Positions 15,031 to 39,370 of a stretch of DNA of 64,000 bases are shown piece by piece. Source of the DNA: Takakia lepidozioides. Its lineage: Eukaryota; Plantae; Bryophyta. Where the stretch lies: positions 78,182,001 to 78,246,000 of the forward strand of contig CM060731.1 of the NCBI GenBank assembly GCA_030704615.1. Direction: 5' to 3'. The notes below the pieces were generated by a model that saw only the letters and a list, made by a program, of their open reading frames with translations, was not told the origin of the DNA and did not search any database. The position numbers and the translations under genes are program-made. Numbering within the stretch: the first letter of the stretch is position 1; every line of letters begins with the position of its first letter.

Positions 15031-15918
15031 GGAATGCTCTCAGGGAAGATGTGACGCACCTTGTTGGCGCCCCGTGCCTTACTGGCGCCACTAACCTTGT
15101 TGGTGCCAACTGCCTTAGTGGCGCCACCTACATTGTTTGACGCCCATGTTGTCAACAAGTGGTGTGAACAACTAAGTTGATTTGTCGAGGGACGTGGTGG
15201 TCATACGGTATTCCTTCGTGTACCAAATGCCCCACAAATCAAAGATGAAAACATCTAAGCATAAATTTGAAGGATCTAAGAATCTATTAGAGAATATTGG
15301 CTGAACAAGTGGGATGAAGACATGGGCATTTGGTATTCCAAAGCATATGTTTGCCCACAAAATCAACCATGGACAAATCATCTACAACCACTAAGTGGTT
15401 GATTTGTCTAGGGTTGTAGATGATTCGTCGATGGTGGTCGTAGATTATTTGTCGAGGGTCGTAGATGATAGTAAAATTGTCGAGCATTTGGTATTCCATA
15501 CAAGAGAACCGGATCTCCGCTGTAAGGAGTAAGGACCCTGGACCGGCCCCGGAGTCCAGACCATCCATGTTTTGCTCTTTCAGCAGAGTGACGCTCCTTG
15601 TCTGAGGAGCTCACGTCCCCTTTCCTCTCTCTTCACTTCGCCCTTTCTTCATCAGGCTCCGCAATTCCGTCGTCGCCAACTCCGCCTTCTCGCTCAGGTA
15701 CCTTGCTGGCCCTGCTTTGGCCTGCGTTGGTGTGTGTTTGGGAGCGGCGGCGTGGTTCCGAATTTTACTCCCGCATGATTTGCTAATCAGCTTTCGATTT
15801 CTGCTTGTATTTGCTCCGCTTTCTTTCTTTCTTTCTTTCTTCCTTGTGGTGTATGAATCTCAAGTTCTCTGTGTTTGGAAAACCAGTGCATTCACTTGTT
15901 CAGGGTCAGGTTTTCACC

Positions 15919-16425: not shown

Positions 16426-16443
16426 AGGGTTTAGGGTTTAGGG
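16426..16443 (+). repeat. Interstitial telomeric tract AGGG(TTTAGGG)2 terminating a Penelope pLTR
   Basis: Exact plant telomere repeat at the edge of the repeat unit. The same edge occurs at 18374-18390 and, inverted, at 39174-39194. Confidence 0.75.
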
Positions 16444-16926
16444 TCTATAAAAGAGTGGAGACAAATGTAGCAGTGCAACAGGATGTGGACCGCGAATGCA
16501 CCGGGTGCAATAAGAACACAATCCGAACCAAAAAGTTTTTAGGGAGGACCGGGTATGGGCGCCTTGAAAAAACTTGTAGATATCTAGATCTTGGGAATCA
16601 AAACTATTAGCGTTGATCCAGAGAGACAGAAAGCTAGAAAAGAAGTGTTGTTGAGATGTTCTAAGATGCAACTGCAAAGATATGCAAAGAAGCAAATATA
16701 TGTGATTGAAACTATTTCACTGAGATGACAGGAGAATAATACCCTATCTCTTTTGCTAGAGAATAGACACAGTAGAGAACGACTTAAGATGCTCATATAA
16801 CACGCAACACTCGAGAAGGAGTTTAATGCATGCAATAGATGATAGCAAACCTAAGGCTCAACAGCATAGAAGAAACATTGAGACAAGAACCCTTAGATGC
16901 AGAATAGTAGCCAATCTCTATAAAGT

Positions 16927-16966
16927 CCCAGACTAGTTTCGCTCAACAAGTGAGCTCATCAGTGGG
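16927..16966 (-). ncRNA. Type I minimal hammerhead ribozyme (intact core)
   Basis: CCCA-CUGAUGA-GCUCA cuugu UGAGC-GAAA-CUAG-UC/UGGG: all conserved core bases, paired stems I and II, palindromic stem III. Predicted cleavage after 16931. Confidence 0.9.
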
Positions 16967-17005
16967 AGAGAAATGGAATGAGGTACACAGAGCCTCACCC
17001 CCAGC

Positions 17006-17012
17006 TTATATA
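17006..17012 (-). promoter_or_regulatory. TATA box of pLTR (second copy at 17953-17959)
   Basis: CAGTATATAAGC is conserved in both copies, about 27 nt upstream of an Inr-like TCATTC/TCACTC and about 40 nt upstream of the ribozyme. Confidence 0.6.
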
Positions 17013-17029
17013 CTGCTGTAAGGGGTTGT

Positions 17030-17425
17030 CTCAAATAGGCACAAGACCAAAATAAGTAAAAGAAAGTTATTTCTATGTCTAGAATATGAAAAAGTTCTTT
17101 TTTGTGTCTAAAAAATAACTTCATGCCGAAATAAAAAATAAAAAAAACTTTTAAAGCCTAAAACTGGCTTGACAAAAATCAATAATATCTCTCCAATATA
17201 ATTGACTCTATTGTAACTTAACATAAGCACGATAAGAATACAAAATCCCTCGAGTCTTTTTTCAAACTAAAAGCTTGTAGAAAGAAGGTAATTACAGAAC
17301 TTTAGCAAAGTACTAATGAAGTTTAGGGTGTAGGACGTCCCTAAGGTTTAGAATAGAACACATATGAATGTTCAAGCTTCAGAATCAGAGGGGTCCACTT
17401 GCCTGTCAACTTCTGAGTAGGTTGA
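17030..17425 (-). mobile_element. 5'-truncated diverged Penelope-like fragment (RT C-terminus and 3' UTR)
   Basis: Colinear similarity to 22350-22770, e.g. CAGAACTTT...GTTTAGGGT.TAGGAC..CCC.AAGGTTTAGA...GAATG.TCAAG.TTCAGAA. Confidence 0.7.
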
Positions 17426-17870
17426 CAAAAAATTGGAACTATAAATGTAGGAGTACAACAAATTCGAACCGCGAATGCACCGGGTGCAATAGTAGCACAG
17501 TGCAGACTTAAAAGTTTTTAGTGGGGCCGGTTATGCTCCGAAAAAAACTTCAAGATATCTATTGAAAAACTCAAAGAGATGATTCTGAAGACAAAAAGGT
17601 AGGATATGAGTGATGTTGATATGTTCTAAAGTGCAATTGCAAAGACATGCAAATGACTAAAGTGTATGACTGAGACTGTTTCACCATAAATACAGGATAA
17701 CAAAAACCTATCTCTTATGGAAGAGAAAACACACACTAGAGAACAAACCTAGCAGCAAAGGCAAAACTAAACAGACAATCTAAACAATACAACTGTAAGG
17801 TACAACAACACAACGGAGAAAGTGAGACAAAACACACTTATATGCAGAATACTAGCAAATCTTTATAAGC

Positions 17871-17910
17871 CTCAGACTAGTTTTGCTCAAAACCTGAGCT
17901 CTTCAGTGGG
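17871..17910 (-). ncRNA. Second hammerhead ribozyme copy, probably inactive
   Basis: CCCA-CUGAAGA-GCUCA gguuu UGAGC-AAAA-CUAG-UC-UGAG: the core GAAA is mutated to AAAA and stem I has one mismatch. Confidence 0.8.
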
Positions 17911-18707
17911 AAGACAGAAATGGAGTGAAGTACAATGAGCCTCACCGCCAGCTTATATACTGTCGAAGGATTTTAATATACTGTCGACAGTTGCTTTGAG
18001 ACGTTGCAATCTCTTAAAATCCTTCTTGTATTGTATGAAAGAATTGTCCAATAACTTTTGAGCAGCCTCCACAAAGGTAGGAGTGTGATCCCGTTTGTTG
18101 AAAAACATGCCCACTCGTGGTCTCGAAGAAAAACACTCCCAAATTGTGTACAGCTTCCTACTTTAGAAAGTATCATTGCAGACGGTCGCGACATTAATCT
18201 CCACAGCAGTACTGAAGGGACCCCAACCCTCTTTGCCCATCGTTTATTGCAGTTGTCACCTCTTGCAACATTTCAACCTCTACCTCTTTACTTGCCACTT
18301 TCTACCTGCCCTAACCTAAACCCTAAACCTTAACTCATTCCTTATTCTATAATGAAAAGCTAGTTTGGCAACATTTTAGGGTTTAGGGTTCAGAGTTCAC
18401 AGAAAGTGTCAAAACAAATGTAGCAGTACAACGTGGATGCACCGGGTGCAAAATAAACACAATCCGGGCAAACAAGTTTTTAGGGAGGCTTGTTATGCAC
18501 CCCTGGAAAAATTTCAGATACTGTGAATCAAACCTAAAAAGAGAGATCCCGAGAGACAGGAAACTAGAGTAGAAGTATGTGAGGTGTCCTGAAATGCAAT
18601 TGCAAACCTATGCAAGAGGCAAAAGTGCGTATGAGAACTATTTCACTGGATGCACAGGAGAATATAACCCTATCTCTATTTTGCAAGAGAATGGACACAC
18701 TAGGAAC

Positions 18708-20110
18708 AACACTTTCACTGTAGTGCTGGATGAAGCGCAGGTGTTGGGAAGGAAAAATGTAAATGACTATGAATCCCCCGAGACGAAAGAGCTAAGGTCC
18801 ATTTTTTCTCCGTTGATCAAAGCCCTAGTGGGGCCATCTATGGCGTTGCCAAAGCAGAAAGTATTTGTTGCTGGTACAGGTGTCAGTTGAAGCTGGAAGC
18901 GGACATAGGTTCGCTGATTGCAAAAGAAGAGGGTGGTGGCCCGGTTCAATTTTCTTCTGCTCCATTTTCTTCATGGACAGATGTGCGTCAGGTTCTGAAA
19001 TTCTGCAGCGAGTACCTGAAGCTAGAGGATGATCATATGGAGGACAATGCCCAGTATCTGCTGGAAAAGTTCAGAGGCCGTCGAAGGTGTTTGGTAAGTT
19101 GTGTCGAGCGCCTTCTGAGGAAGGCTGGAGGAAGATGGGATATAACGGTAGTAGACAACTATTTCAAGGAGATCACAATCAACACCAATGACAGCACTTC
19201 CATTTATTATGCTGTGAGCGCTCTGTGTGGAGCAAAAGGAACATTTGTCCTGAAAGAAGAATCATTCAATGGTGCTTCCTTGGTGCAAAGAATAGGAACC
19301 TCCTTTGCCTATGCAGGGAGGGGAGAACATACCGTTTCAACGGACGGAGATATGACTTTGCTCGAGTGTGGCCTTGGACAGCTACACCATTCAACAGGTC
19401 CCCAATTCACTTTCTCTATAGTCGAACCGACAATCCATCATAACATCATGAACTATTTGACGATCAACCATTCATTTGAGAAATCACTTAAAGACTACAT
19501 GGTTGATTGCAAGGATGATCCCAGTGCAATGGGTAGGGCATGGGAGAAACTTTTCACAGTTCATGTGGCCAAGCTGTTTGACGGCACAAAATTGTTGGCC
19601 GATATGTGCTGTTTCAAGGATGCAACCCTGCCTCCAAAATTCGCAAGGGACAAGCCAACGATTACCGGTGAAGGTGAAGGAGTGTGGAGGGAGTCATATA
19701 GGATCCACACCGTAAGTAAATTTCTTGATGCTGAAGAGAAATCTCGTCCGCCATGCCTCATTTTTGACGACAGATCTGGAGCTGATGTTCTTTTTGTTGT
19801 GAGACTTGGGAATTTGAAGATTCCTGTCTTCTGTCAACTGAAGCTGCGATCTGAGGTGCAGTGGGCTAGAGCAGTGGCAACTACAGATCCGGAACAAATG
19901 TACAAGAATAGTTCCGAGTCCAAAACGAGGGCGCTTGCCGCATGCAAAGATGGTTGCATTAGCTTGGTAGTTGCCTATCCTGCAAAGAAGCCAGCTAAAC
20001 TTCAATCTGAATGCCAAGATAATCGTTTAATTGGCTATATTGGACAGGTAGAAGCGGAGGATTTGTTTGACCGCGTGTTATGTGATTTCTTACGTTCTAT
20101 CAAGGAGTGA
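18708..20110 (+). pseudogene. Crinkler/RHS-type P-loop NTPase (C-terminal part) plus PD-(D/E)xK REase-fold module; one frameshift near 18887
   Basis: Walker B VVLDEAQ, then R..FSPL...VAGTG.S, followed by PCLIFDDRSGADVLF...IPVFCQLK (G.D...Q.K REase-like site). The Walker A region is missing and replaced by pLTR sequence. Confidence 0.75.
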
Positions 20111-20752
20111 CGGGGACAAATTTTGTGATGGCTCATGGAGTATTGAGAAGGTGAGATTCATTGGGATACTGGCTCTATTTTTTTGTGTTTGGTGACATTT
20201 CTATATTCTCTTGTTGCTGTCACACCTTTCCATGCTATAGAAATATACTACTAAGTTAGACTGCTTCTGTATTCAACCATGGACCAACTTCAAGAACCTG
20301 TGAAAAAGGGACACAAATTAATGACAAGTATGTTTTCATGAACCAATCAATGAGTTCATCAGCTTTGTGTTACACTGATACGATGGTGTGACAAGTTTGC
20401 AGGATATTCCAGAATAATTTTGTTTCCAGGGGAGTCGGCAGGTCAATTGGTTCAACACCAAGGCTCTATGTTGTAGTGCACTGGACATCAGGTGCCATTG
20501 AGAATTGAGATTAGGTGTGAATATTCTTGAAGTTGTGTTTTGGCTACACTTGGCGGTGAGTCAAGTGAACCAAATAGCGTTAAGATAGACTTCTACTAGG
20601 AGTTGTAGACCAGAGTTTTTCATATCATTGGAAGATGTGCAGGCACTCTGAGTATCAGATTCCTTGTGTGTGTCGACGTTGGCTTCTCTGCAGTGATTTC
20701 CGTGATCACTTTTGATTTTTTGTGATTTACCATTCGGAAATTAAAAACCAAC

Positions 20753-21000
20753 AGTCGGTAGCTCAGTTGGCTAAGTGCACTAAGTGCGACCGAGGCGATT
20801 CTGGGGTCGAATCTTGCTACTGACGGGTGTGGCATACTCTTCTCCCCGGTTCCTGGTCCTGTTCCTATGCCTCGCGGCGCGGGTTACTGTGAAAGAGGTT
20901 ATTTTCTCCTCTCACTGTTAAGGGGCCCTGTCGCTCCGAGGTGTTCCTTTTTTTTTAAAGAAAAAACAATAAAGTAAAACAAAATAAAAGAATAAATACA
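20753..21000 (+). mobile_element. tRNA-derived SINE (partial copies at 21957-22065 + and about 36695-36811 -)
   Basis: A box TAGCTCAGTTGG, B box GGGTCGAATC, 3' end CTGTCGCTCC.AG..TTCCTT shared with the SINE at 13685-13905, and an A-rich tail. Confidence 0.8.
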
Positions 21001-22344
21001 AATACGTGAAGAATACAAATATATGAAGAGGTACAAATACATGAAGAAATCAAAAGTGCTTTTTATTTCGGAACAAAGGGAGTAAAAGATGAAAACCATT
21101 ATTTAGAGTTCACCTTATTTGTGTCACTATGCACTAGTAATGTACAAGTCAAAAAATTTAATGTAAGACATTGATATATAGTGACCTACAAAGTTGCACA
21201 AATAGCTGGGTGATTTTTACATTTTAGAGCCGGGCTGCATGCAGGGGCAGGCTGCCCTTCAATTTTCTTAGAGCCCAACTAAACTGGCAAATCGCAGATC
21301 TCATAACGGGGTACTGCCACCTCGTGCATGTCAGGAAACGGGCCCTCCACTTGCTGACTGGAGAATGTATGTCTTTGCGTTGCAAGGGAAACTCCGCTTC
21401 AAGGTTTTTAGTCGGTGCTCTTCTTTCCAATTCCATACCACCTTGCAATCTTTGCGTTCCTCTCCTGTTTTTCATTTGTTTTTGTTTTGATTCTCCACTG
21501 CAATCACACGCCACATTTTCATGTATTTCGTTTCTGTCACCCCAACATTTCCTCTCCAAGCATTTATTGCTCAATTCCCCGTCTCCAATTGCATAGGGGT
21601 TCTTGCAACCCTAGCTGTCCGTGCATAGGACCATGGACGAGGAGGATGCGGATCTTGATCGTGGCTTTCGTTTCGATCGTTGTTCGGGAAGCGCAAGCGG
21701 ACCAGTCAAAGGCGGAGAGCGGCTGTGCTCGGCGATTTAGGCAGGAGTCCTCATATGCAGTATCACGCTCTGTCTCTCGTCCGTGAGGTATTCCACAATG
21801 GCAATCGTTCGAAAATTGAGCATAGTTTTCCGATTTTGTGATTGAAGTGAAACCTAATTTTTTTGCTGTTGTCAAAAATAAGGTGATCGTACCAAAATAA
21901 GTGATATATTAATCATTGGGCATAGTTACTACTATTAGAATGGTCAAGTTTTTGTATAAGTGCACTAAGTGCGACCGAGACGATTCTGGGGTCGAATCTT
22001 GCTACTGACGGGTGTGGAATACTCTTCTCCCCGGTTCCTGGGTGGTGTCCCGTTCCTACGAGTCTTCTCATATGTTTTTTTTGTTGATATATTTCTGTCA
22101 CATGCACATAGAACTTTCAGATCAGGGCCAGAAACTCACAATGTCAGAAACAAGCTCCCTCTCCACACGAGAGAAGACTCGGTCTGCTCCCAGGCTTGAA
22201 TATGTTGTCCTCTTAGCAGGCTGCAGCACCACTACAGTCAATCAGTATGCAGCCATAAACTGAGATGTAGTGAAGAGACAAGTCATCTTCCTCACTGCTC
22301 CATGTCTGTAACGTAGATTTAAAAACCCAAGTTTCAAATGCAAA

Positions 22345-24016
22345 CCTTATACTGTCGAATAAGTGATGTCTCAAAAAGTGCATAAGATAAAAAGACAACT
22401 AAAAGTATCTTTTAGCCGAGAAAGGTCTTTTTTCTAGAAAAGAAAAAGTTCTTTTTCCAACTTAAGCCTGTAAGCCAAGAATATCTCTTTTCTAAAAAAG
22501 AAAAAGGTCTTTTTCCAACTTATGCCTGTAAGCCAAGAATATCTCCTTTAATATAATTGATTCTATTGTAAATAGGAACGTAAATTCCTCGTTTTTTTCC
22601 AACAAACCATAGGTTTGTCAAAAGATGCTAACTGCAGAACTTTCAGAAGATGCTCATGCAGTTTAGGGTTTAGGACTCCCCCAAGGTTTAGAGCTTTGAG
22701 TATATCGAGAATGCTCAAGTTTCAGAACCACGGGGGCCCGCTTACCCATCAACTTACGAGTGGATTCTGAAGCTAACAGTGTAGCACGTTGTGCGTAGTC
22801 ACATAGACTAAAACACTCTAAGATAAAAGACTTTGGATAGCCTCGAGCACGCAGTTGTTCATAGAACAGTCGTCTGATCTCTGAAAAACCTGCACATGTG
22901 CTTTCTCTCAAAATGTATCGGCGTAGCTCACCAATGATGAATGCTCGTTTTTGGTGTCGCGGATGACAGGACGTCCATAGCTAGTACCGATATCTGTTGA
23001 GTGCCTTCTGATGACATCTCGAAGATAGAATCCCACTATTGACAAAATCAGCTCCCTTGAAGAATTGAATATCAAGAATGTCAATAGTAGAGTCAGAGAT
23101 CACCCTTTGAATGCGAATTGTGGGACTGAGAGAGTTGTATCGATCGAGCTAAGTCTCCAAACTTGCCCGAGATCCTTCCCAGATTCCAAATCCGTCATCG
23201 ATGTATCTCTTGTAGTACAAAGACCATATACCTCTTGCTGCGCAAGCCAATTCTCTTTCTAAGCTGCAAAGAAAGAGACAAGCATACACAACAGCAAAAT
23301 TGCTACCCACTGCAGTGCCTTGGATTTGATGCCAATAGCTCGAGCCAAATTGAAGTTGTTCTCCAAGACCATGTGAGAAAGACTCATGACGAGTCTCCTT
23401 CAAACCGGGGTAACTTGAGCTTGCCGGTAATCATGTCCTTCAATCGTCGAAGCCCGTCCCCAGTAGGAATGCTAGGGTACAATGACTCCACATCAAAGGT
23501 GAATAGAAACACATCTCGAGGAAGTTGTCTACTCGACAGATCTTTCAACAAAGAAATTGAATCTATCAAATGATTACGTTCTTGAAGCAAAATAGGAAAC
23601 AAATGGTACTGTAACCACTTGGATGCGTGTTCAAAAAGGTACCCATTGTACGAACAAATTGGTCTCCCAACCACCACGGGTTTGTGCATTTTGGGCACAA
23701 GATAAAACATGCAGGGTCGGTAGCCCCCTTGGGGCTTGAAAGCCTAAAAATCCTTTTCCTGCTTGTCGATTAATCCCCGCATAAAAGCAGAAGTGAGCAC
23801 TGCATCCAAATCATACTTGAGATTGTCCCATGGAATCTCTGCCACAGATTCATAAACTTGTCCATCGTGGAGTTGGCGGTGTGCCTCATCTATGTACCAA
23901 TCCTTATGCATGATCACCAACCCAAGATTTTTGTCCGCGGGATTGATGACGATGGAGTCATCTGTAGTCAGAGCACGCATTGCGGTCTTGAGATGACCTC
24001 AAATAGAGGACTTGAA
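22345..24016 (-). mobile_element. Endonuclease-less Penelope-like element, RT pseudogene (left copy)
   Basis: PADKNLG, PKMHKP..RPI, FDVESLYPSIP, QIQGTAVGS, RYIDD, LRARGYP; several stops and frameshifts. Confidence 0.92.
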
Positions 24017-24376
24017 AGGGCTCCACCTAGTGAGCGCCTCCGCCTCCTTGAGTGCCTTGGGCACTCAAGGGTGCTTCGACAGAGCGAGCCGGAAAGCGAG
24101 CAAAGAGTGGGGAGCTGTTCCGGACTGCCAACTACCAAAGGGAATTCCGCTGGTTCCGAAGGGGTGAAGGGTTCTTTGGGAGATCGTAGGGGGGACCGTT
24201 ATGCCCCGGTGAGCAGCCGAAGCTCCAAGTTGGCCCGGCGGCCAGGTTGGGAGTTAGGCGCGCGCATCAAGCGAGTAACTATGACTTGAGGGGGGAACTT
24301 ACCGAAGTGAGGTGCGCGACACTTGGTATCAGAGCATAGAGTTCAGTACGCAATCGTCCTTGGGATTGGCCTCATC

Positions 24377-27300
24377 ATGGGGTCGGGCAAGCCAAAGCCA
24401 AAGCGGAACGGCCCAAAAGCTGATGATCCCGGTGAGCCCGATGGGGGCGACGTGTCACCGAGGCGGCCGTTTGAGGAAGCGATGCATGTTTCCGAAAATG
24501 AGGCCGCTCAAGAGCGGGAGGGATCTAAGGAGTCGGAGCCTGAGGAATCTCTGAGAGCTCCGACCGACCAACAGATGCCTCCCATGCCGGCAGCCTTTTG
24601 GGAAGGGTTGTTGGCGCAATTTGGCGGGACGTTGAAAGACGTGTTGAAGGCGGCTAATGCTACTTCCACTAAAGCAAAGTTTAAGGTGAAGCCTAAGGAA
24701 CCCGGCACCTTCGAGGGCGTCCGAAATCGGAAGGCACTCAACATCTGGCTCTTGGAGCTAGAGCAGTACTTCCGGGCGGCCAAGTTAAGTGACGAGGATC
24801 GGGTGGAAGTGGCTCCCACCTATTTGAGGGGCTATGCTCAACAATGGTGGCAGAAACGCCTTCACGACCGAGGTCCAAGCCCGGAAACCTTGAACTGGAG
24901 TGGGTTCAAGGAATTGATGAAGGGCAGTTTGTGCCCCTCAACGCGTCCTGGCTCGCCCAGGACAAGATGAGGAATTTGAAGAAAACAGATGACATTCGGG
25001 GATATGTCCAGGCTTTCAATGTGCTGTTGCTCGAAGTCGCGGACATGGCAAAACCAAAAATGGTCTTCAACTTTGTGGCAGGACTGGCCCCATGGGCCAG
25101 GCGGAAGTTGGAGGAGAAGCCACCTAAGACTTTGAACGAGGCAATTGAGAGGGCTGAATGTTTCTCGGATGTCCCTAAGGGTGAAAGACAAGGCCGTACG
25201 GAGCTGAACCACAAGAAGACCCGGCGGGAAGGTGACTCCTTCCGACCGGAAAAGAAGTGGGATAGGCCACGCGGCGACAATGGCACGTGGAAATCGAAGG
25301 GAGGGCCTTCACAAGTCAAGGCGGCACCCGGTACTTCGAAAGGAAAAGCGGGTGGAGCTGCCTATGGCGGACAGAAGGCGACCTTTGATGGAGTGTGTTT
25401 CAATTGCGGGGAGCCCGGGCATATGGCCAAGAAGCCCCGGCAATTGAACATGACTCGGGTGACCACAGAGCTGTCGAAAGATACCATCAGTCGCTTGGTG
25501 GAAGCGGTGGTCGCCAGGACTTGCAAGGTAGGCAAATTTTCTTGTGAGTTGTATCAGGAAACTGACGCCTTACGTAAAGGGAGTCAGTTATTGTTCGTGG
25601 ATGGGATAATATCCGGAACTAACGTGTCGTTGTTGGTGGACATAGGAGCGTCGCACTCCTTCATGACACCGGCAACGGCACAAAAGCTGGGACTCCCGAC
25701 AAGTGATGTGGGGGCCCTCTATTGAGGTGCGTTCTGCCAAAGGAGAACCGCAATTGGCGACAAGGTTGGCGTTTGATGTTCCTCTTCAACTGGGGAGTTG
25801 GGAGGGACATGAGAACTTCACCATCTGCGAGATCGATGGAGTGGATCTCATTTTGGGGATGTCCTTTATGAGCAAATCCGGAGCGGTCATAGATGGCCGC
25901 AAGAGAGTAGTCACGCTGCCATGTGGGAATGGTGGCGAGGTCTTACGAGTGTCGGAAACGCCTAAACCCGTGGGAGGGCGAATAAACCTTCTGTCAGCAA
26001 GGGAATGGGCCGTGGAAGAGGCACACGAGCCCCAGTTTTTGCTCTTCATTAGAGAAGTGAAGGGAGAAGGCGATGGGTAGCCGAGCCCAAATTGGATCAT
26101 GGGGATTTTGGAGAAATACCAGGATGTAATGCCGGAGGATTTATCAAGCGGCTTACCACCGCGAAGAGGAGTTGACCACAAGATTGAGGTGATACCGGGA
26201 TTGGAACCGCCTGCCAAGGCGCCCTACCGGTTGAGCCACAGAGAGTTGGTCGAGCTGAAGACTCAGCTCAAAGATCTAATGTCAAAGGGGTACATCCGGC
26301 CGAGTAAGTCACCTTACGAAGCCCCGGTGCTATTTGCAGACAAGAAGGATGGGACGTTGTGGATGTGTGTCGATTACAGGGCTTTGAATAAGGTGATTAT
26401 CAAAAACCGGTACCCTTTGCCAAGGATCGACGACCTTTTCGATCGGTTGGCAGGAGCGAAGTATTTCAGCCGGATCGATCTGCGCTCCGGCTATCATCAA
26501 ATTCGAGTGGCGGAAGGAGATGAGGAGAAGACCGCGTGCAGGACAAGGTATGGTTCATATGAGTTCTTGGTGATGCCTTTTGGACTCACCAACGCTCCCG
26601 CAACCTTTAGCACGCTGATGAACAACCTTTTCCAGGAGTGGTTGGATGACTTTGTGATCGTGTACATCGACGATATCTTGGTGTATTCAAAAACAAATGA
26701 GGAGCACCTGGAGCACCTCAAAAGGGTGTTCCAGAAATTGCAGGAAGGGAAGTTGTATGCCAAAGCTTCAAAGTGCGAATTCGGGGTCACAAAAGTGGAG
26801 TTCATGGGGCATGTGATTACACAGGATGGGAACAGAATGGATGACAGGAAGGTGAGGGCAATCTTGGACTGGGAGCCTCCGACTTTGGTCCCGGGAGTGT
26901 GATCCTTCCTAGGACTCGCCTCCTATTACCAGAAGTATGTGAGAAATTTCGCCAAGATCGCGGGGCCGCTGTCAGACCTTCTGTGTAAATCCAAAGTCTG
27001 GGCATGGAACACCTTTTGTGGCCAAGCTTTTGCTGAATTGAAGCAGCGGATGGCGGAAGCTCCAGTCTTGAAAATCCCGGAGTTCGATCGTCCGTTCGAG
27101 ATTCATACAGATGCGTTAGACTTCGCGATTGGGGGTGTATTGATGCAAGATGGACGTCCAGTGGCTTACGAAAGTAAGAAACTGAATGAAGTAGAGCGAC
27201 GGTGGCCGACGCACGAGAAAGAGATGAAGGCGGTGGTGCACTGTCTTGAGCTTTGGCGCCACTATGTTGGTTCCAACCCAGTGAAGGTGTTCACGGACAA

Positions 27301-28930
27301 TGTCACGGTGAAGTATTTTGCCACGCAGCCCAAGCTGCCCCCAAAACAACTTAGGTGGCAAGATACTTTGGCGGTGTTCGACGTGGATATCCAGTATAAA
27401 CCGGGACGGGACAACGTGGTGGCCGATGCTTTAAGTAGAAAGCAGCAGCTCCTGTTGGTGTACAGAGGTGAGACGACGCTCCAAAGGAAGATCCGGAAGG
27501 CTTGCCGGAAGGATGAGCTAGCAAAGTCCGTGATGCAGGACTTGAGGATGGGGATTAAATCGTAGTTCCACTTGCAAAATGGATTGCTCCGGTATAAGCA
27601 AAAGCGTCTCTACGTGCCGAAGGAAGGGATCAGAGATAGCCTCTTGAGAGAATGCCATAATAACCCGCTTGCGGGCCACGGCGGAGCCAAGCGCACTACG
27701 GCACTCTTGAAGAAAGAGTATTTCTGGCCCAAACTGAGGGAGGAGGCAGAGGAGTATGTCAAGACATGCACCACATGCCAACAAAACCGGAGCGAGTACA
27801 AAAAGCAAGCGGGGCTGTTACAACCCTTGCCGATTCCAGAGGGGACTTGGGAAAGCGTCTCGATGGATTTCATGACTGCTATGCCGCTGTCAAAAGGATT
27901 CGATGCAATCATGGTGGTGGTGGATAGGTTCAGTAAAATGGGCCATTTCATCCCCACCAAGGAGACGGCTACAGCGCAGGAAACAGGTTGACTTTACTTC
28001 GCCCACGTCTTAAAGCATCATGGAGTCCCGAAGGATATTGTCTCGGACCGCGATCCAAAGTTTACGAGTAAATTTTGGAGGGCACTTTGGAACAAGATGG
28101 GGACGAGGCTGAAGATGAGCATCGCCTTCCGACCTATGACCGACGGCCAAACGGAAAGAGTGAATTCCGTAGTGAAGCAGATCTTGCGGAATTACGTGTC
28201 GGCAGACCAAACAGACTGGGTGGAACACTTAGACGAGGCATAGTTCTGTTATAATAACACAAAACACTCCGCAACGGGAGTTTCCCCTTTCGTATTGGTC
28301 TATGGAAAAGCACCTCTGGTGCCGACAAGTTGGGCCGCCCAGGACGTTGAGGAACCGGCAGTAGCGGTGGTACTGGAAGAATGCGAGCATTTGTTGAAGC
28401 TCGCAAAGTACAACATTGCCAAAGCTAGGAAACGGTATGAAAGGCAGGTGAATCGGAAGCGGAGGGAAGTGAAGTTTGAGGCAGGCACGGAGGTCTGGTT
28501 GAACATCAAGAATTTCCGACTATCTCCGGAAGTGAGTCCAAAGTTCGTACCTCCGTATGCGGGACCCTTTCACATCCGGAAGGTGATGAATGAGGATGTG
28601 TAAGAATTGGAGCTGCCGGCAAACAGCAAGGTGCATCCAGTATTCCACGTCTCCCTTTTGAAGCCTTACTTCAAAGATGAAGCGCGTCCGAATCGGCATC
28701 AAGTGTTGCGTCCGCCACCTGTGCTGTTGGATCATGAAAATGAACCTGAGTACGAGGTAGAGGCAGTACTTAAGTCGAGGAGGTTCAAGAACCGAGAAAC
28801 GGAGTATCTCGTCAAATGGAAGGGCTATCATCATGTGGAGGCATCTTGGGTGCATGCCTCAGAAATGGGAAACGCATCCGAGGCGGTTGCAGTTTTCGAA
28901 TGGCGACCTCAAAAGCGGAAGAAGCGTTGA
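24377..28930 (+). pseudogene. Gag-Pol-chromodomain pseudogene of gypsy element 2
   Basis: Gag P.TFEG, CFNCGEPGH, LVDIGASH, YIDD, RNase H, integrase VSMDF and chromodomain EYEVEAVL...YLVKWKGY...SW; multiple stops and frameshifts. Confidence 0.93.
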
Positions 28931-29836
28931 TGGGGACATCAACCTTGGAGCGTGGGGGAGGAAATGCATGCTTAGCCTGGCTTAGCTAGCTTAGGAATCT
29001 GATTGCAAAAACTTGTATTGTACAAAAATTTGTTATAAAAGAAATGGATTCCAAATGTTGTGCGTCCTATTTTGTTTGGAATGGTGATGCATGGTGTGGT
29101 TGGCTAGTGTGTAGGATGCATGCTAGCTTACAAAAGTGGGAGAGGTAAATTGGGTTAATCGTGTGTTTGCGCAGTGCCGAAATCGGGTGACTCCCATCCA
29201 AGGGGCAATGAAACTTGCGCCTTCTTTAGGAGTTCACGTGCTAGTGCGCACCTGGCGCGTGCGCGTACTATAACTGCGCTACCGAGGGGGTTGCCTTGTA
29301 GTGCGGGCTAACACGGAAGCTACCTGCTTCCGTTCACGTACTATAATCGTGTAGCCTCGGGACGAAGTCGTAGTGCGGCTTCGGCGTGTTCCCGTACCTC
29401 AGGCCAGCATTCCAAGGCGGACCCAATTGTAGTGATTGGGGCGCGCGGTTGGTTCAAGGTTATCTTCCTAGTCAAAGAGGGTTCGAGGTGAACCCTTGCT
29501 CAAGGTGATGCCAAAAGCGACATCATGAGCGGTCGCAAGCAATGTTGTTGCAGTAAGGCGATTCGATCCTCGGGGAGGATCGTTCCTTGGCCTCGAAGTA
29601 GGCCAAGAAGAGTGCACTGGGAGGAGCTTGAGAGGCTCCACCCTTGGCCGGGACTTGGAGGAAGTCGGCCGAACTAGCTAGTGGAGAGTAGAGTCAAGTG
29701 TGGGGTTTGGTTCTTTGTCATGGGACGCCATGGTACGGAAACAAACTCCTTGATGTGGGATGCCACAACTTGGATGTTCGTTTCCACAAAATGGACAAGC
29801 CGATGAGGACATCGATTCCCTGTTGGTAGGGGTGTG

Positions 29837-30563
29837 TGTCGCGGCCCTTTGCCTTGAGGGCAGGAGGGTCGGGACACAAGAGGGGCTGCCCCTGTGGTGG
29901 GGGCAGTGGCAGCGATAGGTATGAGGGGCTGAAGCACCCTTGAGTGCCCAAGGCACTCAAAGAGGCGGAGGCGCTCACTAGGTGGAGCCCCGCACACCGG
30001 GTTGCGGTGGGGGTGGCTCCACAAGGGGTGGTGGTAGCTTAGCCGGACTTAGTGGGGGTGGCATAGGACTCACCCTGGGGCGGAGACCTCGTGGTGGGAG
30101 TCGTGGGGAGTCTTGGGACTCATCACGGTCCATAGGGGCCGTGGTGGGTTGGCCAAGACTCACCGCGACTCGTCACCGGGAGTCGAGGGTGTTTGTGGTG
30201 GTTCGCCATAAAATGGCATGGTTGTTTGTGAAACCCCCGCGGACAGCTACAGAAGTATATATAGGGAGTAGTAACCCCGAGAACGGTGCAAGCCCGTTGG
30301 TGACCAAAAACTAGTGAGTAAACGAGCGAGCCGGAAAGCGACCAAAGAGTGGGGAGCTGTTCCGGACTGCCAACTACCAAAGGGAATTCCGCTGGTTCCG
30401 AAGGGGTGAAGGGTTCTTTGGGAGATCGTAGGGGGGACCGTTATGCCCCGGTGAGCAGCCGAAGCTCCAAGTTGGCCCGGCGGCCAGGTTGGGAGTTAGG
30501 CGCGCGCATCAAGCGAGTAACTATGACTTGAGGGGGGAACTTACCGAAGTGAGGTGCGCGACA
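29837..30563 (+). repeat. 3' LTR of gypsy element 2 (727 bp)
   Basis: 7-bp terminal inverted repeat, purine-rich tract upstream, internal TATATA near 30256; the last about 240 bp match 24081-24321. Confidence 0.88.
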
Positions 30564-33385: not shown

Positions 33386-36300
33386 CATGCTTGTAGAATT
33401 TCTTCTCCTAAGCTTGTGAATTTCTTCTCCTCTTTGGCCGTTCGACCTTCCCTTGATGCAAGCATTCAATCAGCCACTCTTGCTTTCCATAACACTTTAC
33501 AAAAAGCCTTCATCAAGGCTCATGTGGAGGTGTTGGCAGAAGCAGAAACCACTTTGAGCAAATCATTTGATCTTTTCATTGCTCGACTCCAGGAGATCAG
33601 ATCCCATGTGGACGTCTCTTCTTGTCTTGACAAAGATGAGGACTCTATTTGGATTTTCGAGGAGCTTGAGTTTGTATGCACTGAAGCTACCAAGTCTTGG
33701 TTTGCTGGAATCTCTTATTTTTGTGCTAACCACAACTTGGCAACCACTGTGAGGGAAACGGCTTTGCGTAAAAAGAATCGCGCTAAGGATGCCGCCATGG
33801 CAGATGCTGATGTTCTTCCGTGCGAGCCTTCCATTGCCGAGCTTGTTAGGAAAGAGGTGCAGAAGCAATTTTCCTCCAAAGGGAATAACTCTTCTCTCTC
33901 CCCTAAACAACGACCAACCTACAAGAGACACTTCACCAAATTCCAAAGCAAGTTCTTTCAAGCAACAGGGAAATGGACAGCAGCGGAGTGGGATTGCTCG
34001 CATCCGTTCCGCTGCATCGCGTTTCTCTTCTCCGAGCAAATCCGCCCTGCATTCTCAGACCCCTCATGGTTTTGGCAAACAAAAGTCGGGGCAAAGCCCA
34101 CAACAGAAGCCCAAAAAGAAGGTAACTTGGGTAGGATCAAATCGAAAAGAGCCCGCAAGCTGTTTTGGTGGCCGTTGAAGGATGTAGAGGCCTATAAGCT
34201 TTTTCTTTTCTCTGGCAAGAGAGTCTCTCAGGTAGAGAATAGGTTAACCAATGTGACCATCCACAACATGGCCAATCGACCACTCTCTTGTTTTGAAAAG
34301 AAGCTTTTAGGCTTAGGTTTGAGCTTCATTCCACATCCTACTCCTCCGTCTACTACTTCTATTCTTGATGCTTATGAGGCTTTTGCTCGATCTTTACGTC
34401 TTCGACATCACTCCCGTGATGCTAGAGATAGACCCATTCCTCCATTTAGAGTCCCTAACCCTTCTTGGGATCAGTGTGTACGGCTTCCTGCTTTAGAAAG
34501 TATCATTGCAGACGGTCGCGACATTGTAAAGGCTCGCTTCAAGGATGTGGTTCGCCTGCCTTCAAGTCCTCTATTCGAGGTCATCTCAAGACTGCAATGC
34601 GTGCTCTGACTACAGATGACTCCATCGTCATCAACCCCGCGGACAAAAATCGTGGGTTGGTGATCATGCGTAAGGATTGGTACATGGATGAGGCACACCG
34701 CCAACTCCACGATGGACAGGTTTATGAATCTGTGGCAGAGATTCCATGGGACAATCTCAAGTATGATTTGGATGCAGTGCTCATTTCTGCTTTTATGCAG
34801 GGATTAATCGACAAGCAGGAAAAGGATTTTTTGGCTTTCAAGCCCCGAGGGGGTTACCGACCCTGCATGTTCTATATTGTGCCCAAAATGCACAAACCTG
34901 TGGTGGTTGGGAGACCAATTTGTTCGTACAATGGGTACCTTTTTGAGCACGCATCCAAGTGGTTACATTACCATTTGTTTCATATTTTGCTTCAAGAACG
35001 TAATCATTTGATAGATTCAATTTCTTTGTTGAAAGATCTGTCGAGTAGACAACTTCCTCGAGATGTGTTTCTATTCACCTTTGATGTGGAGTCATTGTAC
35101 CCTAGCATTCCTACTGGGGACGGGCTTCGACGATTGAAGGACATGATTACCGGCAAGCTCAAGTCACCCCGGTTTGAAGGACTCGTCATGAGTCTTTCTC
35201 ACATGGTCTTGGAGAATAGCTATCTTCAATTTGGCTCGAGCTATTGCCATCAAATCCGAGGCACTGCAATGGGTAGCAATTTTACTGTTGTGTATGCTTG
35301 TCTCTTTCTTTGCAGCTTAAAAAAAGAGTTGGTTTGCGCAGCAAGAGGTAGGACTCGTCATGAGTCTTTCTCACATGGTCTTGGAGAACAACTATCTTCA
35401 ATTTGGCTCGAGCTATTGGCATCAAATCCGACGCACTGCAATGGGTAGCAATTTTGCTGTTGTGTATGCTTATCTCTTTCTTTGGAGCTTAGAAAGAGAG
35501 TTGGCTTGCGCAACAAGAGGTATATGGCATTTGTACTACAAGAGATACATCGATGACGGATTTGGAATCTGGGAAGGATCTCGGGCAAGTTTGGAGACTT
35601 GGCTCGATCGATACAACTCTCTCAATCCCACAATTCGCATTCAAAGGGTGATATCTGACTCTACTGTTGACATTCTTGATATTCAATTCTTCAAGGGAGC
35701 TGATTTTGTCAATAGTGGGATTTTATCTTCGAGATGTCATCAGAAGGCACTCAACAGATATCAGTACTTGCCATGGACGTCTTGTCATCCGTGACACCAA
35801 AAACGAGCATTCATCATTGGTGAGCTACGCCGATACACTTTGAGAGAAAGCACATGTGCAGGTTTTTCAGAGATCAGACGACTGTTCTATGAACGACTGC
35901 GTGCTCGAGGCTATCCAAAGTCTTTTATCTTAGAGTGTTTTAGTCTATGTGACTACGCACAATGTGCTACACTGTTAGCTTCAGAATCCACTCGTAAGTT
36001 GATGGGTAAGCGGGCCCCCTTGGTTTTGAAACTTGAGCATTCTCGATATACTCAAAGCTCTAAACCTTGGGGGAGTCCTAAACCCTAAACTGCATGAGCA
36101 TCTTTTGAAAGTTCCGCAGTTAGCATCTTATGACAAACCTATGGTTTGTTGGAAAAAAACGAGGAATTTACGTTCCTATTTAGTTCGTGCTAAGTTACAA
36201 TAGAGTCAATTATATTAAAAGAGATATTCTTGGCTTACCGGCATAAGTTGGAAAAAAGACCTTTTTCTTTTTTAGAAAAGAGATATTCTTGGCTTATAGG

Positions 36301-36410
36301 CTTAAGTTGGAAAAGAACTTTTTCTTTTCTAGAAAAAGACCTTTCTCGGCTAAAAGATACTTTTAGTTGTCTTTTTATCTTATGCACTTTTTGAGACATC
36401 ACTTATTATA
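33386..36410 (+). mobile_element. Endonuclease-less Penelope-like element (longest copy); frameshifted ORF about 33416-36203
   Basis: Helical N-terminal region, HNMA...EKKLLGLGLSFIP (PLE N-terminal motif), ADK, all RT motifs, thumb S.HP...LRARGYP. Ends KTRNLRSYLVRAKLQ* with no GIY-YIG domain. Confidence 0.92.
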
Positions 36411-39370
36411 AGGTTTGCATTTGAAACTTACAGACATGGAGCGTTACAGACATGGAGCAGTGAGGATGACGACCTTCACTACATCTCAGTTTATGGCTGC
36501 AAACTGATTGACTGTAGTGGTGCTGCAGCCTGCTAAGAGGACAGCATATTCAAGCCTGGGAGCAGACCGAGTCTTCTCTCCTATGGAGAGGGAGTTTGTT
36601 TCTGACATTGTGAGTTTCTGGCCCTGATCTGAAAGTTCTATGTGCATGTGACAGAAATATATCAACAAAAAAAGCATATGAGAAGACTCGTAGGAACGGG
36701 ACACCACCTAGGAACCGGGGAGAAGAGTATGCCACACCCGTCAGTAGCAAGATTCGACCCCAGAATCGTCTCGGTCGCACTTAGTGCACTTAGCCAACTG
36801 AGCTACCGACTGTTGGTTTTTAATTTCCGAATGGTAAATCACAAAAATCAAAAGTGATCACGGAAATCACTGTAGAGAAGCCAACGTCAACACACACAAG
36901 GAATCTGATACTCAGAGTGCCTGCACGTCTTCCAATGACATGAAAAACTCTGGTCTACAATTCCTAGTAGAAGTCTATCTTAACGCTCTTTGGTTCACTT
37001 GACTCACCGCCAAGTGTAGCCAAAACAAAACTTCAAGAATATTCACACCTAATCTCGATTCTCAATGGCACCCGATGCCCAGTGCACTACAACACACAAC
37101 CACGCCTTGGTGTTGAACCAATTGACCTGCCGACTCCCCTGGAAACAAAATTATTCTGGAATATCCTGCAAACTTGTCACACCATCGTGTCATGCAGTGT
37201 AACACAAAGCTGATGAACTCATTGATTGGTTCATGAAAACATACTTGTCATTAATTTGTGTCCCTTTTTCACAGGTTCTTGAAGTTGGTCCATGGTTGAA
37301 TACAGAAGCAGTCTAACTTAGTAGTATATTTCTATAGCGTGGAAAGGTGTGACAGCATCAAGAGAATATAGAAATGTCACCAAACACAAAAAAATAGAGC
37401 CAGTATCCCAATGAATCTCACCTTCTCAATACTCCATGAGCCATCACAAAATTTGTCCCCGTCACTCCTTGATAGAACGTAAGAAATCACATAACACGCG
37501 GTCAAACAAATCCTCCGCTTCTACCTGTCCAATATAGCCAATTAAACGATTATCTTGGCATTCAGATTGGAGTTTAGCTGGCTTCTTTGCAGGATAGGCA
37601 ACTACCAAGCTGATACAACCATCTTTGCATGCGGCAAGCGCCCTCGTTTTGGACTCGGAACTATTCTTGTACATCTGTTCCGGATCTGTAGTTGCCCACT
37701 GCTCTAGCCCACTGCACCTCAGATCGCAGCTTCAGTTGACAGAAGATAGGAATCTTCAAATTCCCAAGTCTCACAACAAAAAGAACATCAACTCCAGATC
37801 TGTCGTCAAAAATGAGGCATGGCGGACGAGATTTCTCTTCAGCATCAAGAAAATTTACTTACGGTGTGGATCCTATATGACTCCCTCCACACTCCTTCAC
37901 CTTCACCGGTAATCGTTGGCTTGTCCCTTGCGAATTTTGGAGGCAGGGTTGCATCCTTGAAACAGCACATATCGGCCAACAATTTTGTGCCGTCAAACAG
38001 CTTGGCCACATGAACTGTGAAAAGTTTCTCCCATGCCCTACCCATTGCACTGGGATCATCCTTGCAATCAACCATGTAGTCTTTAAGTGATTTCTCAAAT
38101 GAATGGTTGATCGTCAAATAGTTCATGATGCTATGATGGACTGTCGGTTCGACTATAGAGAGAAAGTGAATTGGGAACCTGTTGAATGGTGTAGCTGTCC
38201 AAGGCCACACTCGAGCAAAGTCATATCTCCGTCCGTTGAAATGAAATGGTATGTTCTCCCCTCCCTGCATAGGCAAAGGAGGTTCCTATTCTTTGCACCA
38301 AGGAAGCACCATTGAATGATTCTTCTTTCAGGACAAATGTTCCTTTTGCTCCACACAGAGCGCTCACAGCATAATAAATGGAAGTGCTGTCATTGGTGTT
38401 GCTTGTGATCTCCTTGAAATAGTTGTCTACTACCGTTATATCCCATCTTCCTCCAGCCTCCTCAGAAGGCGCTCGACACAACTTACCAAACACCTTCGAC
38501 GGCCTCTGAACTTTTCCAGCAGATACTGGGCATTGTCCTCCATATGATCATCCTCTAGCTTCAGGTACTCGCTGCAGAATTTCAGAACCTGACGCACATC
38601 TGTCCATGAAGAAAATTGAACCGGGCCACCACCCCCTTCTTTTGCAATCAGCGAACCTATGTCCGCTTCCAGCTTCAAAAAGCTGACACATGTACCAGCA
38701 ACAAATACTTTCTGCTTTGGCAATGCCATAGATGGCCCCACTAGGGCTTTGATCAACGGAGAAAAAATGGACCTTAGCTCTTTCGTCTCGGGGGATTCAT
38801 AGTCATTTACATTTTTCCTTCCCAACACCTGCGCTTCATCCAGCACTACAGTGAAAGTGTTGTTCCTAGTGTGTCCATTCTCTTGCAAAACAAAGATAGG
38901 GTTATATTCTCCTGTGCATCCAGTGAAATAGTTCTCATACGCACTTTTGCCTCTTGCATAGGTTTGCAATTGCATTTCAGGACACCTCACATACTTCTAT
39001 TCTAGTTTCCTGTCTCTCGGGATCTCCCTTTTTAGGTTTGATTCACAGGATCTGAAATTTTTCCAGGGGTGCATAACAGGCCTCCCTAAAAACTTGTTTG
39101 CCCGGATTGTGTTTATTTTGCACCCGGTGCATCCACGTTGTACTGCTACATTTGTTTTGACACTTTATGTGAACCCTGAACCCTAAACCTAAAATGTTGC
39201 CAAACTAGCTTTTCATTATAGAATAAGGAATGAGTTAAGGTTTAGGGTTTAGGTTAGAGCAGGTAGAAAGTGGCAAGTAAAGAGGTAGAGGTTGAAAGGT
39301 TGCAGAGGTGGCAACTGCAATAAACGATGGGCAAAGAGGGTTGGGGTCCCTTCAGTACTGCTGTGGAGAT
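34561..39370. repeat. Right arm of large inverted duplication
   Basis: Reverse complement of 18197-24016, lacking about 1.1-1.2 kb between the two SINE copies. Confidence 0.95.
37462..38861 (-). pseudogene. Second copy of Crinkler NTPase-REase module with several frameshifts
   Basis: Translations nearly identical to 18708-20110, split over several frames. Confidence 0.8.

Follow-up and report, generated by a model that had tools for sequence, protein, structure and literature searches.

A predicted, sequence-intact type I hammerhead ribozyme next to a TATA box in a relic Penelope-like element of the moss Takakia lepidozioides

A short stretch of contig CM060731.1 of the moss Takakia lepidozioides (assembly GCA_030704615.1) reads as a hammerhead ribozyme lying close to a TATA box, which raises the questions of whether the ribozyme is genuine, which element carries it and what a promoter placed directly before a ribozyme would do. 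The window analysed here is the whole stretch of 64,000 nt from position 78,182,001 to 78,246,000 of the forward strand, and all coordinates below are positions in it. An earlier note, made from the letters of this window, had described an intact hammerhead at 16927-16966. Judged by its sequence, 16926-16967 is a genuine and intact hammerhead, preserved in a relic copy of an endonuclease-less Penelope-like element (PLE) of a plant. We consider it probable that it is the hammerhead of the 3'-terminal module, or pseudo-long terminal repeat (pseudo-LTR), of an endonuclease-deficient, telomere-attaching plant PLE, in a 5'-truncated copy inside an old interstitial chain.

The hammerhead described in the earlier note is there, but its strand had been overlooked: the ribozyme is on the minus strand (16967->16926), and the plus-strand letters of 16927-16966 are its reverse complement. 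Read on the minus strand, 16927-16966 is CCCA-CUGAUGA-GCUCA-CUUGU-UGAGC-GAAA-CUAG-UC-UGGG, and the complete CUGAUGA...GAAA...UC core, the 5-bp stem II, the stem I and the palindromic CUAG that the note listed can all be found in it. The parts are as follows.

16926..16967, minus strand: intact type I hammerhead, found by pattern, descriptor and covariance model (55.8 bits; Rfam HH9 gives just 19.8 bits)
16967-16963 with 16930-16926, minus strand: inner helix I, UCCCA with UGGGA, 5 bp
16915..16971, minus strand: extended helix I, UCUC (16971-16968) with GAGA (16918-16915), 4 bp
16925-16919, minus strand: bulge of 7 nt in the 3' strand of helix I
16962-16956, minus strand: core C3-A9, CUGAUGA, all conserved positions present
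16955-16951 with 16945-16941, minus strand: helix II, GCUCA/UGAGC, 5 bp including the G10.1-C11.1 pair
16950-16946, minus strand: loop II, CUUGU, read from the sequence
16940-16938, minus strand: G12 A13 A14, read from the sequence
16937-16932, minus strand: A15.1-CUAG-U16.1 (ACUAGU), a perfect 6-nt palindrome to which helix III is reduced, read from the sequence
16931, minus strand: C17, with the predicted cut between 16931 and 16930

The core at 16962-16931 (minus strand) therefore has C3 U4 G5 A6 N7 G8 A9, G12 A13 A14, the A15.1-U16.1 pair and an H17 that is not G. The topology is that of type I, with three helices, the G10.1-C11.1 pair, helix I open (both RNA ends lie in it) and helix III capped by a loop of 4 nt. 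The predicted cut agrees with the 5' end at 16930 given in the earlier note. The extended helix I is also seen in the RNAfold minimum-free-energy structure, and related copies likewise have a bulged and extended helix I.

Short consensus patterns do arise at random, and the window is rich in repeats. The loosest consensus pattern occurred by chance in 18 of 100 shuffles, and Rfam gave no match at the gathering threshold over the whole window. The Rfam search that the earlier note had set as a check does not back the call: the best model, RF02275 Hammerhead_HH9, scores 19.8 bits (E-value mode) against a cut-off of 52. We put this down to the curated models, which are limited where helix III is very short, and see in it no contradiction of the core. 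The exact-core pattern had no match in 100 shuffles. A loose structural descriptor of our own, which demanded three pairs each in helices I and II and nothing of loop III, found one site in the window against an expectation of just 0.04 per dinucleotide-shuffled window (300 shuffles). A covariance model built from 29 hammerheads of the relatives' set, the window's own copy among them, recovers its member site (55.8 bits) and, independently, a second copy nearby. A chance match is therefore vanishingly improbable, and we regard it as ruled out by covariation, by the match of the covariance model to the second copy and by homologues with covarying helices that adjoin relatives of the element's reverse transcriptase (RT) in dozens of independent contigs.

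These relatives were collected as six loci by exact protein look-up and 73 by RT alignment, a search blind to the ribozyme (together L001-L079); L080 was added. The RT relatives of 74 fetched loci mostly have 40-57% amino-acid identity, and the best matches of the RT fragment have 46-50%. The named relatives are Cryptomeria japonica and Ginkgo, and the remainder are metagenome and Sequence Read Archive (SRA) contigs; the nearest named Atlas clusters of P0004 (46% identical to the window RT) are rotifer DUF8422/HTH_animal proteins. The descriptor finds 27 distinct hammerheads in the relatives' loci, 26 of them on the RT strand. With the covariance model there are 54 matches in L001-L079, 40 of them non-identical, and 38 of these 40 are on the RT strand. 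The SRA assembly L080 adds a further hammerhead from outside the model (30.1 bits), which brings the totals to 41 non-identical copies and 39 on the RT strand. The hammerheads either lie 0.8-1.7 kb past the matched RT segment or precede it by one unit length, and L013 has two that are 5139 nt apart. The locus L002 is a complete unit of 4.7 kb with (CCCTAAA)n on both sides, in the order ORF1 (open reading frame 1), RT, TATA box, hammerhead, tail of ~190 nt and telomere repeats.

In 29 aligned copies, 89.7% of cells are paired compared with 74.6% in shuffles, double changes occur in 11 of the 13 pairs, and the signal is lost when the partners are slid by 1-3 columns; the inner pairs of helices I and II are paired by construction, as the descriptor demanded three pairs in each. 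Loop III, of which the descriptor demanded nothing, is a 4-nt palindrome flanked by A and U in 29 of 29 copies (100% paired). Five palindromes occur (CUAG, CAUG, CGCG, CCGG and UGCA) and no non-palindrome, as selection for an intermolecular helix III predicts. A separate case is L024 (~960-1010), where the 3' half of a hammerhead (GAAACTAGTT...) and the tail are kept and unrelated sequence stands in place of the 5' half (CUGANGA and helix II).

The second copy in the window and the unit that holds it are:

17870..17911 (17911->17870), minus strand: second hammerhead copy, covariance model 36.9 bits, E 9e-8, the copy being outside the model
17443..17962 (17962->17443), minus strand: unit 2, from a TATA box (17959-17953) through the tail, with the same layout as unit 1, which holds the intact ribozyme

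In the second copy N7 is A (U in the first) and loop II is GGUUU, as the earlier note had seen, but two further changes had escaped it: G12 is replaced by A at 17884, so that the core reads AAAA in place of GAAA, and there is a C.A mismatch in helix I (UGAGG in place of UGGGA). G12 is the general base of the hammerhead reaction. The second copy is therefore probably inactive, and because of the change in its core it cannot be used as evidence for selection on structure, as the earlier note had done. Units 1 and 2 lie in tandem ~950 nt apart and are 71% identical overall. Identity is 82-83% from TATA box to ribozyme and 58-70% in the tail, which gives mild support, from two sequences only, for a constraint on a candidate TATA-ribozyme module. 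No clear telomere repeat was seen at the junction of unit 2 with unit 1.

The element to which the ribozyme belongs can be recognised from the unit and from longer copies in the window:

16426..17418 (17418->16426), minus strand: unit 1, a 5'-truncated copy of a Penelope-like element, 71% identical over 246 nt to the RT end of the full copy
16426..16443, minus strand: (CCCTAAA)2CCCT, reverse complement of the plant telomere repeat, at the 3' end of unit 1
18375..18710, minus strand: tail with CCCTAAA repeats (18388-18375) of an inverted, broken full-length copy, with no TATA box and no hammerhead
34465..36088, plus strand: endonuclease-less Penelope-like RT with the motifs DKN, PKMHK, FDVESLYPSIP, GTAMGS and YIDDG, broken by frameshifts and a tandem duplication of 172 bp (35178-35521)
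38859..39189, plus strand: tail and telomere-like repeat of the plus-strand full-length copy, homologous to 16783-16428 of unit 1

Unit 1 (17418-17180) matches the last RT codons and the 3' untranslated region of the full copy (35990-36232). Counted from the end of the RT gene, the order on the sense strand is ~300 nt, the TATA box, ~45 nt, the hammerhead, a tail of 487 nt and (CCCTAAA)n. The ribozyme thus lies in the 3' region of the element and on its sense strand, ~355 nt past the RT stop. The RT motifs, including ADKN, were read in ORFs 34465-35794 and are conserved in the alignment with the relatives. Assignment of the RT to the PLEs is based on these motifs and on the precomputed DUF8422/HTH_animal labels of relatives; PDB sequence searches of RT and ORF1 gave no match. 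A Pfam search at E<=0.1 of the window ORFs and P0002-P0004 found no domain of any kind, hence no GIY-YIG domain, and the RT ORF ends at ~36088; we therefore call the element endonuclease-less.

The plus-strand full-length copy spans ~33400-39190, and the minus-strand copy is its inverted twin. The two stand head to head in an inverted repeat of ~5-6 kb (18197-24077 and 34561-39370, 97-99% complementary), and they share with units 1 and 2 just the last 330 nt of the tail. Stretches of (CCCTAAA)n occur at 16443-16426, 18388-18375 and 39174-39187. Head-to-head inverted copies, 5' truncation and telomere-repeat tails are a signature of PLEs, especially of the endonuclease-less branch (PMC8557442). 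Ty3/gypsy elements fill the window on both sides of the PLE chain, and the chain is therefore interstitial and old. With broken full-length copies, a dead neighbouring ribozyme and copies made from uncleaved RNA (see below), the locus is most likely a relic.

Two further parts of the element may have to do with its copying. At the end of the RT ORF stands a telomere-like CCTAAACCCTAAA, which encodes ...PKP and the stop, at 36076-36089 on the plus strand and at 22662-22675 and 17334-17321 on the minus strand, so that every copy has an internal telomere-complementary site ~300 nt before the position of the TATA-ribozyme module; this could be an alternative priming site. The best-conserved block of the tail (16491-16560, 17470-17539, 18432-18501 and also 39068-39137) holds a near-palindrome, TGCACCCGGTGCA; TTGCACTGCTACATTT-like sequence comes after it, 30-80 nt ahead of the telomere repeats. 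Motifs of the type TTGCAC...CTACATTT are also found in the tail of the distant relative L002 (4560-4660), and the block may be a site of RT recognition or initiation.

The candidate promoter consists of two parts:

17006..17012 (17012-17006), minus strand: TATA box, TATATAA, 50 nt before C3, kept in unit 2 and in a related contig of run X2
16975..16981 (16981-16975), minus strand: initiator-like (Inr-like) TCATTCC, which fits YYANWYY, with the predicted start A at 16979

The predicted start is 33 nt past the first T of the TATA box and 49 nt ahead of the cut, which confirms the distances of the earlier note (TATA/Inr just upstream of the ribozyme and a cut about 50 nt past the start). We searched for TATAWA 30-60 nt before C3 in the 40 non-identical copies of L001-L079, with random positions in the same loci as control. 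A box is present in 33 of the 40 copies compared with 4% of controls. Its distance from C3 is -36 to -39 in 26 copies, with a peak at -38, and -51 to -53 in seven; the window's own copies have it at -50 and -53. The related boxes match the plant TATA consensus CTATATAWA, and the sequence flanking them is ~35% identical, which is near random. The coupling of TATA box and ribozyme proposed in the earlier note is thus no local accident. We reject a poly(A)-signal reading of the box on account of the TATA consensus, the fixed spacing and the wrong order with respect to UGUA-like motifs.

In the L011-L016 family (for example L013, ~1650-1700) the TATA box that precedes the hammerhead has a TCCCACATA resembling an upstream sequence element (USE) 31-32 nt before it, which is the spacing of plant small nuclear RNA (snRNA)-type promoters of RNA polymerase II (Pol II). 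In L007 (3500-3560) two copies of TCCCACATTG stand ahead of a TATA-like CATAAAAGG. Among the loci an snRNA-type USE was found only in this family and in L007, and it is absent upstream of the TATA box of the window copy. The tail of the window copy has runs of T5-T6 ahead of the telomere repeats, which argues for Pol II over Pol III if the RNA is to reach these repeats. Taken together, the data make a promoter the most likely reading of the TATA box, and this putative promoter-ribozyme module and its dimer design are conserved across diverged families.

Two side observations concern the same stretch. Most families have a TTGTA / TGTGTA motif between TATA box and ribozyme at a variable distance, 15-25 nt before the core (16989-16984 in the window). 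Contigs of run X2 at 16950-16987 come from a related copy that retains the TATA box together with the ribozyme's 5' half; its loop II is apparently 5 nt longer (GCGCUGAG after CUUGUU) and helix II would stay intact, and the contig ends there.

The ribozyme belongs by its form to those that act as dimers. The earlier note had placed it in this class, and its helix III of one A-U pair with a palindromic loop (ACUAGU in the window) is consistent with that; the class is treated as dimer-dependent in the literature (PMC4209133). In modelling of the dimer with the core held unpaired, a double hammerhead with a helix III of 6 bp was lowest, at -27.8 kcal/mol compared with 2 x -11.2 for the monomers.

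From these features a way of working can be proposed. Pol II would start ~30 nt past the TATA box, near 16979, and the ribozyme would be the first structured element of the transcript. Because helix III of a monomer would have just one A-U pair, two copies would have to pair through ACUAGU into a double hammerhead, in which each core would cut the site of the other copy. Cleavage would strip a capped leader of ~49 nt; the RNA left over would have a 5'-OH at U16930 and extend across the tail as far as the telomere-complementary repeats. Where units are chained head to tail, this promoter would also transcribe the downstream neighbour, and a transcript with two ribozymes would set free RNA of unit length. 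The C-rich 3' repeats would anneal to a G-rich DNA end, which would prime the RT; this last step is the model of Gladyshev and Arkhipova for endonuclease-less PLEs, as set out in PMC8557442 and PMC13159263.

A number of observations weigh against this working or against the reading on which it is built. TATA box and complete ribozyme are present in unit 1 as well as in unit 2, and unit 1 begins within the 3' end of the RT gene; the RNAs from which the two were copied had therefore started upstream and had not been cleaved. These copies do not match the proposal of the earlier note that the cut defines the ends of element RNAs, and no retrocopy beginning at the cut site was found in the window or in L001-L079. 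The TATA-ribozyme module is absent from the window's full-length copies, as judged by descriptor and covariance model. In the -38 class a start ~30 nt past the box would lie within helix I, so that just 3-7 nt of the helix's 5' strand remained, and RNA initiated in this way may have a weakened ribozyme. The unconstrained minimum of the monomer has the core partly paired with loop III (-14.3 compared with -12.5 kcal/mol for the hammerhead fold). The relatives, too, score below the Rfam gathering threshold (L038, for example, has 32.5 bits). No listed holder of the stretch was found among the sequencing runs searched, and two small runs with the same species label and of uncertain type hold just fragments of related copies, as contigs that are unable to show starts, ends or expression. 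Finally, in the only PLE studied biochemically, that of Anolis, cleavage needed the element's protein, insertion in vitro did not need cleavage and no reads ended at the cut (PMC11167929).

Unconstrained folding usually fails to single out the hammerhead fold. The copies with TATA box and uncut ribozyme, the truncated helix I of the -38 class and the Anolis results would all fit another explanation, namely that the fold is real and the TATA box is not its promoter. The ribozyme would then act only on long transcripts started upstream, as read-through out of the RT gene or out of an adjacent unit, or serve mainly as a 3' fold recognised by the RT, with cleavage incidental, and the AT-rich box would be something else, for example a signal at the RNA level. 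Reviews describe the hammerhead of Athena in similar terms, as a fold at the 3' terminus by which the telomeric stretch is exposed (PMC6431247). We think this explanation unlikely, if the strongest of the alternatives to be weighed. The box is a plant TATA consensus and not AAUAAA, its distance from the ribozyme is fixed though the spacer diverges, and the USE-like TCCCACATA 31-32 nt before it in one family is a feature of promoters. Additionally, the order of promoter and hammerhead has been shown experimentally in a plant retrozyme (PMC12029980).

The tandem arrangement of units 1 and 2, ~950 nt apart and each with a TATA box and a hammerhead, could also suggest that they form a dedicated non-autonomous, retrozyme-like family that is mobilised by the PLE RT once its RNA has been cut at two hammerheads and closed into a circle by a tRNA ligase. 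Animal retrozymes have recently been argued to be non-autonomous derivatives of PLEs (bioRxiv 10.64898/2026.07.22.740005; PMC7229834). We hold this to be distinctly unlikely here: unit 1 begins inside the 3' end of the RT and is most simply an ordinary 5'-truncated copy, there are just two units, only 71% identical and one with a dead core, a unit of ~950 nt compares with repeats of 170-400 nt in animal retrozymes, and the sequencing runs searched gave no RNA evidence, circular or other.

A promoter-ribozyme module of an endonuclease-deficient, telomere-attaching PLE is thus the reading we prefer, and at this locus its cis design cannot run. There is no intact partner for a dimer in cis, since the sole neighbour is dead in its core and has a mismatch in helix I; were the two copies to form a heterodimer, the intact core would cut the neighbour's site, not 16930. 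A more speculative extension, which we regard as improbable, is that TATA box, hammerhead, tail and (CCCUAAA)n form a transcription unit of their own that makes a retroelement-borne, telomerase-RNA-like template, with release gated by dimerisation of the ribozyme. The RT of PLEs is the sister group of telomerase RT. If this were true, there would be an uncapped non-coding RNA of ~0.5 kb with a 5'-OH, its 3' part complementary to the telomeric G-strand, and the PLE RT would copy the module RNA onto chromosome ends. The USE-plus-TATA (snRNA-type) promoter of the one related family would fit a small-RNA gene.

Hammerheads in plant telomere-type PLEs have already been published, and this locus is a further example. 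They were described in the pseudo-LTRs of endonuclease-deficient, telomere-associated PLEs of the plant Selaginella moellendorffii (Cervera & de la Pena 2014, PMC4209133), which are the elements of Gladyshev & Arkhipova 2007. The Selaginella elements share with the one studied here a plant host, the lack of an endonuclease, a type I hammerhead, its location in the terminal repeat on the sense strand and plant-type telomere repeats at the end; the comparison is one of text, not of sequence, and the text compared mentions no TATA box at a fixed distance upstream. The named RT relatives found here are gymnosperms, not lycophytes as is Selaginella. In our literature search we found no description of a PLE hammerhead that is preceded by a TATA box at a fixed distance.

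A hammerhead together with reverse-complement telomere repeats has been described for Athena and Coprina (PMC8557442, PMC6431247). Athena/Terminon of bdelloid rotifers (Arkhipova et al. 2017, as reviewed in PMC6431247 and PMC8557442) resembles the present element in its endonuclease-less RT, in a hammerhead near the 3' end, in the reverse-complement telomere repeats and in head-to-tail chains with 5' truncations. In these reviews the telomeric stretch of Athena comes directly past the hammerhead, whereas 487 nt lie between them here and ~190-260 nt in L002 and L038. With the dimer-acting type I hammerheads of metazoan PLEs and satellites (Forster 1988; PMC4209133) it shares a helix III of 1 bp with a palindromic 4-nt loop and the G10.1-C11.1 pair. 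In contrast with the metazoan hammerheads, the host is a plant and helix I is long and bulged, not that of a stripped 'min-HHR'. The helix II GCUC/GAGC is the consensus of Rfam HH9.

Plant LTR retrozymes such as NbRZ1 (PMC12029980, PMC9695139) likewise have a terminal-repeat promoter directly before a hammerhead that removes the leader, and the transcript of NbRZ1, made from the LTR promoter, loses its 5' leader in this way (PMC12029980). They are of type III, have true LTRs with primer binding site (PBS) and polypurine tract (PPT) and use a Ty3/gypsy RT, whereas the ribozyme here is of type I and belongs to a PLE that ends in telomere repeats. Identity with a plant LTR retrozyme is ruled out by the type I topology, the absent LTRs and the continuity with the PLE RT. 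The promoter of Drosophila Penelope is TATA-less and internal (PMC2377424).

The telomeric retroelement HeT-A of Drosophila has a promoter in its 3' end, as the element here appears to have, and the likeness is one of analogy only. Danilevskaya and colleagues are said to have described it in 1997 as 'promoting in tandem', in that the promoter at the 3' end transcribes the next element of a head-to-tail chain. HeT-A is a non-LTR element of the jockey clade without a ribozyme, unlike the element here.

The plant lineage with TATA box and ribozyme bears on the role of hammerheads in Penelope-like elements and offers a concrete, testable design: a promoter-proximal, dimer-gated removal of a capped leader from an RNA that ends in telomere-complementary repeats. 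A second testable feature is the helix III palindrome, which changes its sequence and yet stays a palindrome. Beyond the one plant that is usually cited as an example, relatives of such elements occur in gymnosperms and in many eukaryotic contigs, and their hammerheads are missed by the curated models of Rfam. The value of this particular locus is modest, as it is a relic copy of a phenomenon that has been published in general terms.

A third hammerhead or a remnant of one was sought in both full-length PLE copies and none was found. A further covariance-model match at 36371-36431 (12 bits) lacks the core and does not represent a ribozyme. The place of the TATA-ribozyme module is occupied in these copies by the ORFs 37845-38990 (minus strand) and 18887-20110 (plus strand), which are antisense to the PLE and have no Pfam match. 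A tandem duplication of 172 bp lies inside the RT of the plus-strand copy only (35178-35349 and 35350-35521). Telomere-type repeats at 18305-18327 (plus strand) and 18375-18388 (minus strand) stand in opposite orientation 45 nt apart, forming a tail-to-tail junction that is itself inside the large inverted duplication and is mirrored at 39174-39254.

At the head of the inverted PLE copy a Ty3/gypsy element is inserted (24082-30563), with ORFs for gag, protease and RT at 24323-27565. Its LTRs of 240 bp (24082-24321 and 30324-30563) are 100% identical, which suggests a very recent insertion into an old structure. Finally, 15363-15438 forms a palindromic hairpin on both strands with mir-5595-like scores of 32 and 30 bits against a cut-off of 100; an inverted repeat is a likelier explanation for it than a microRNA gene.

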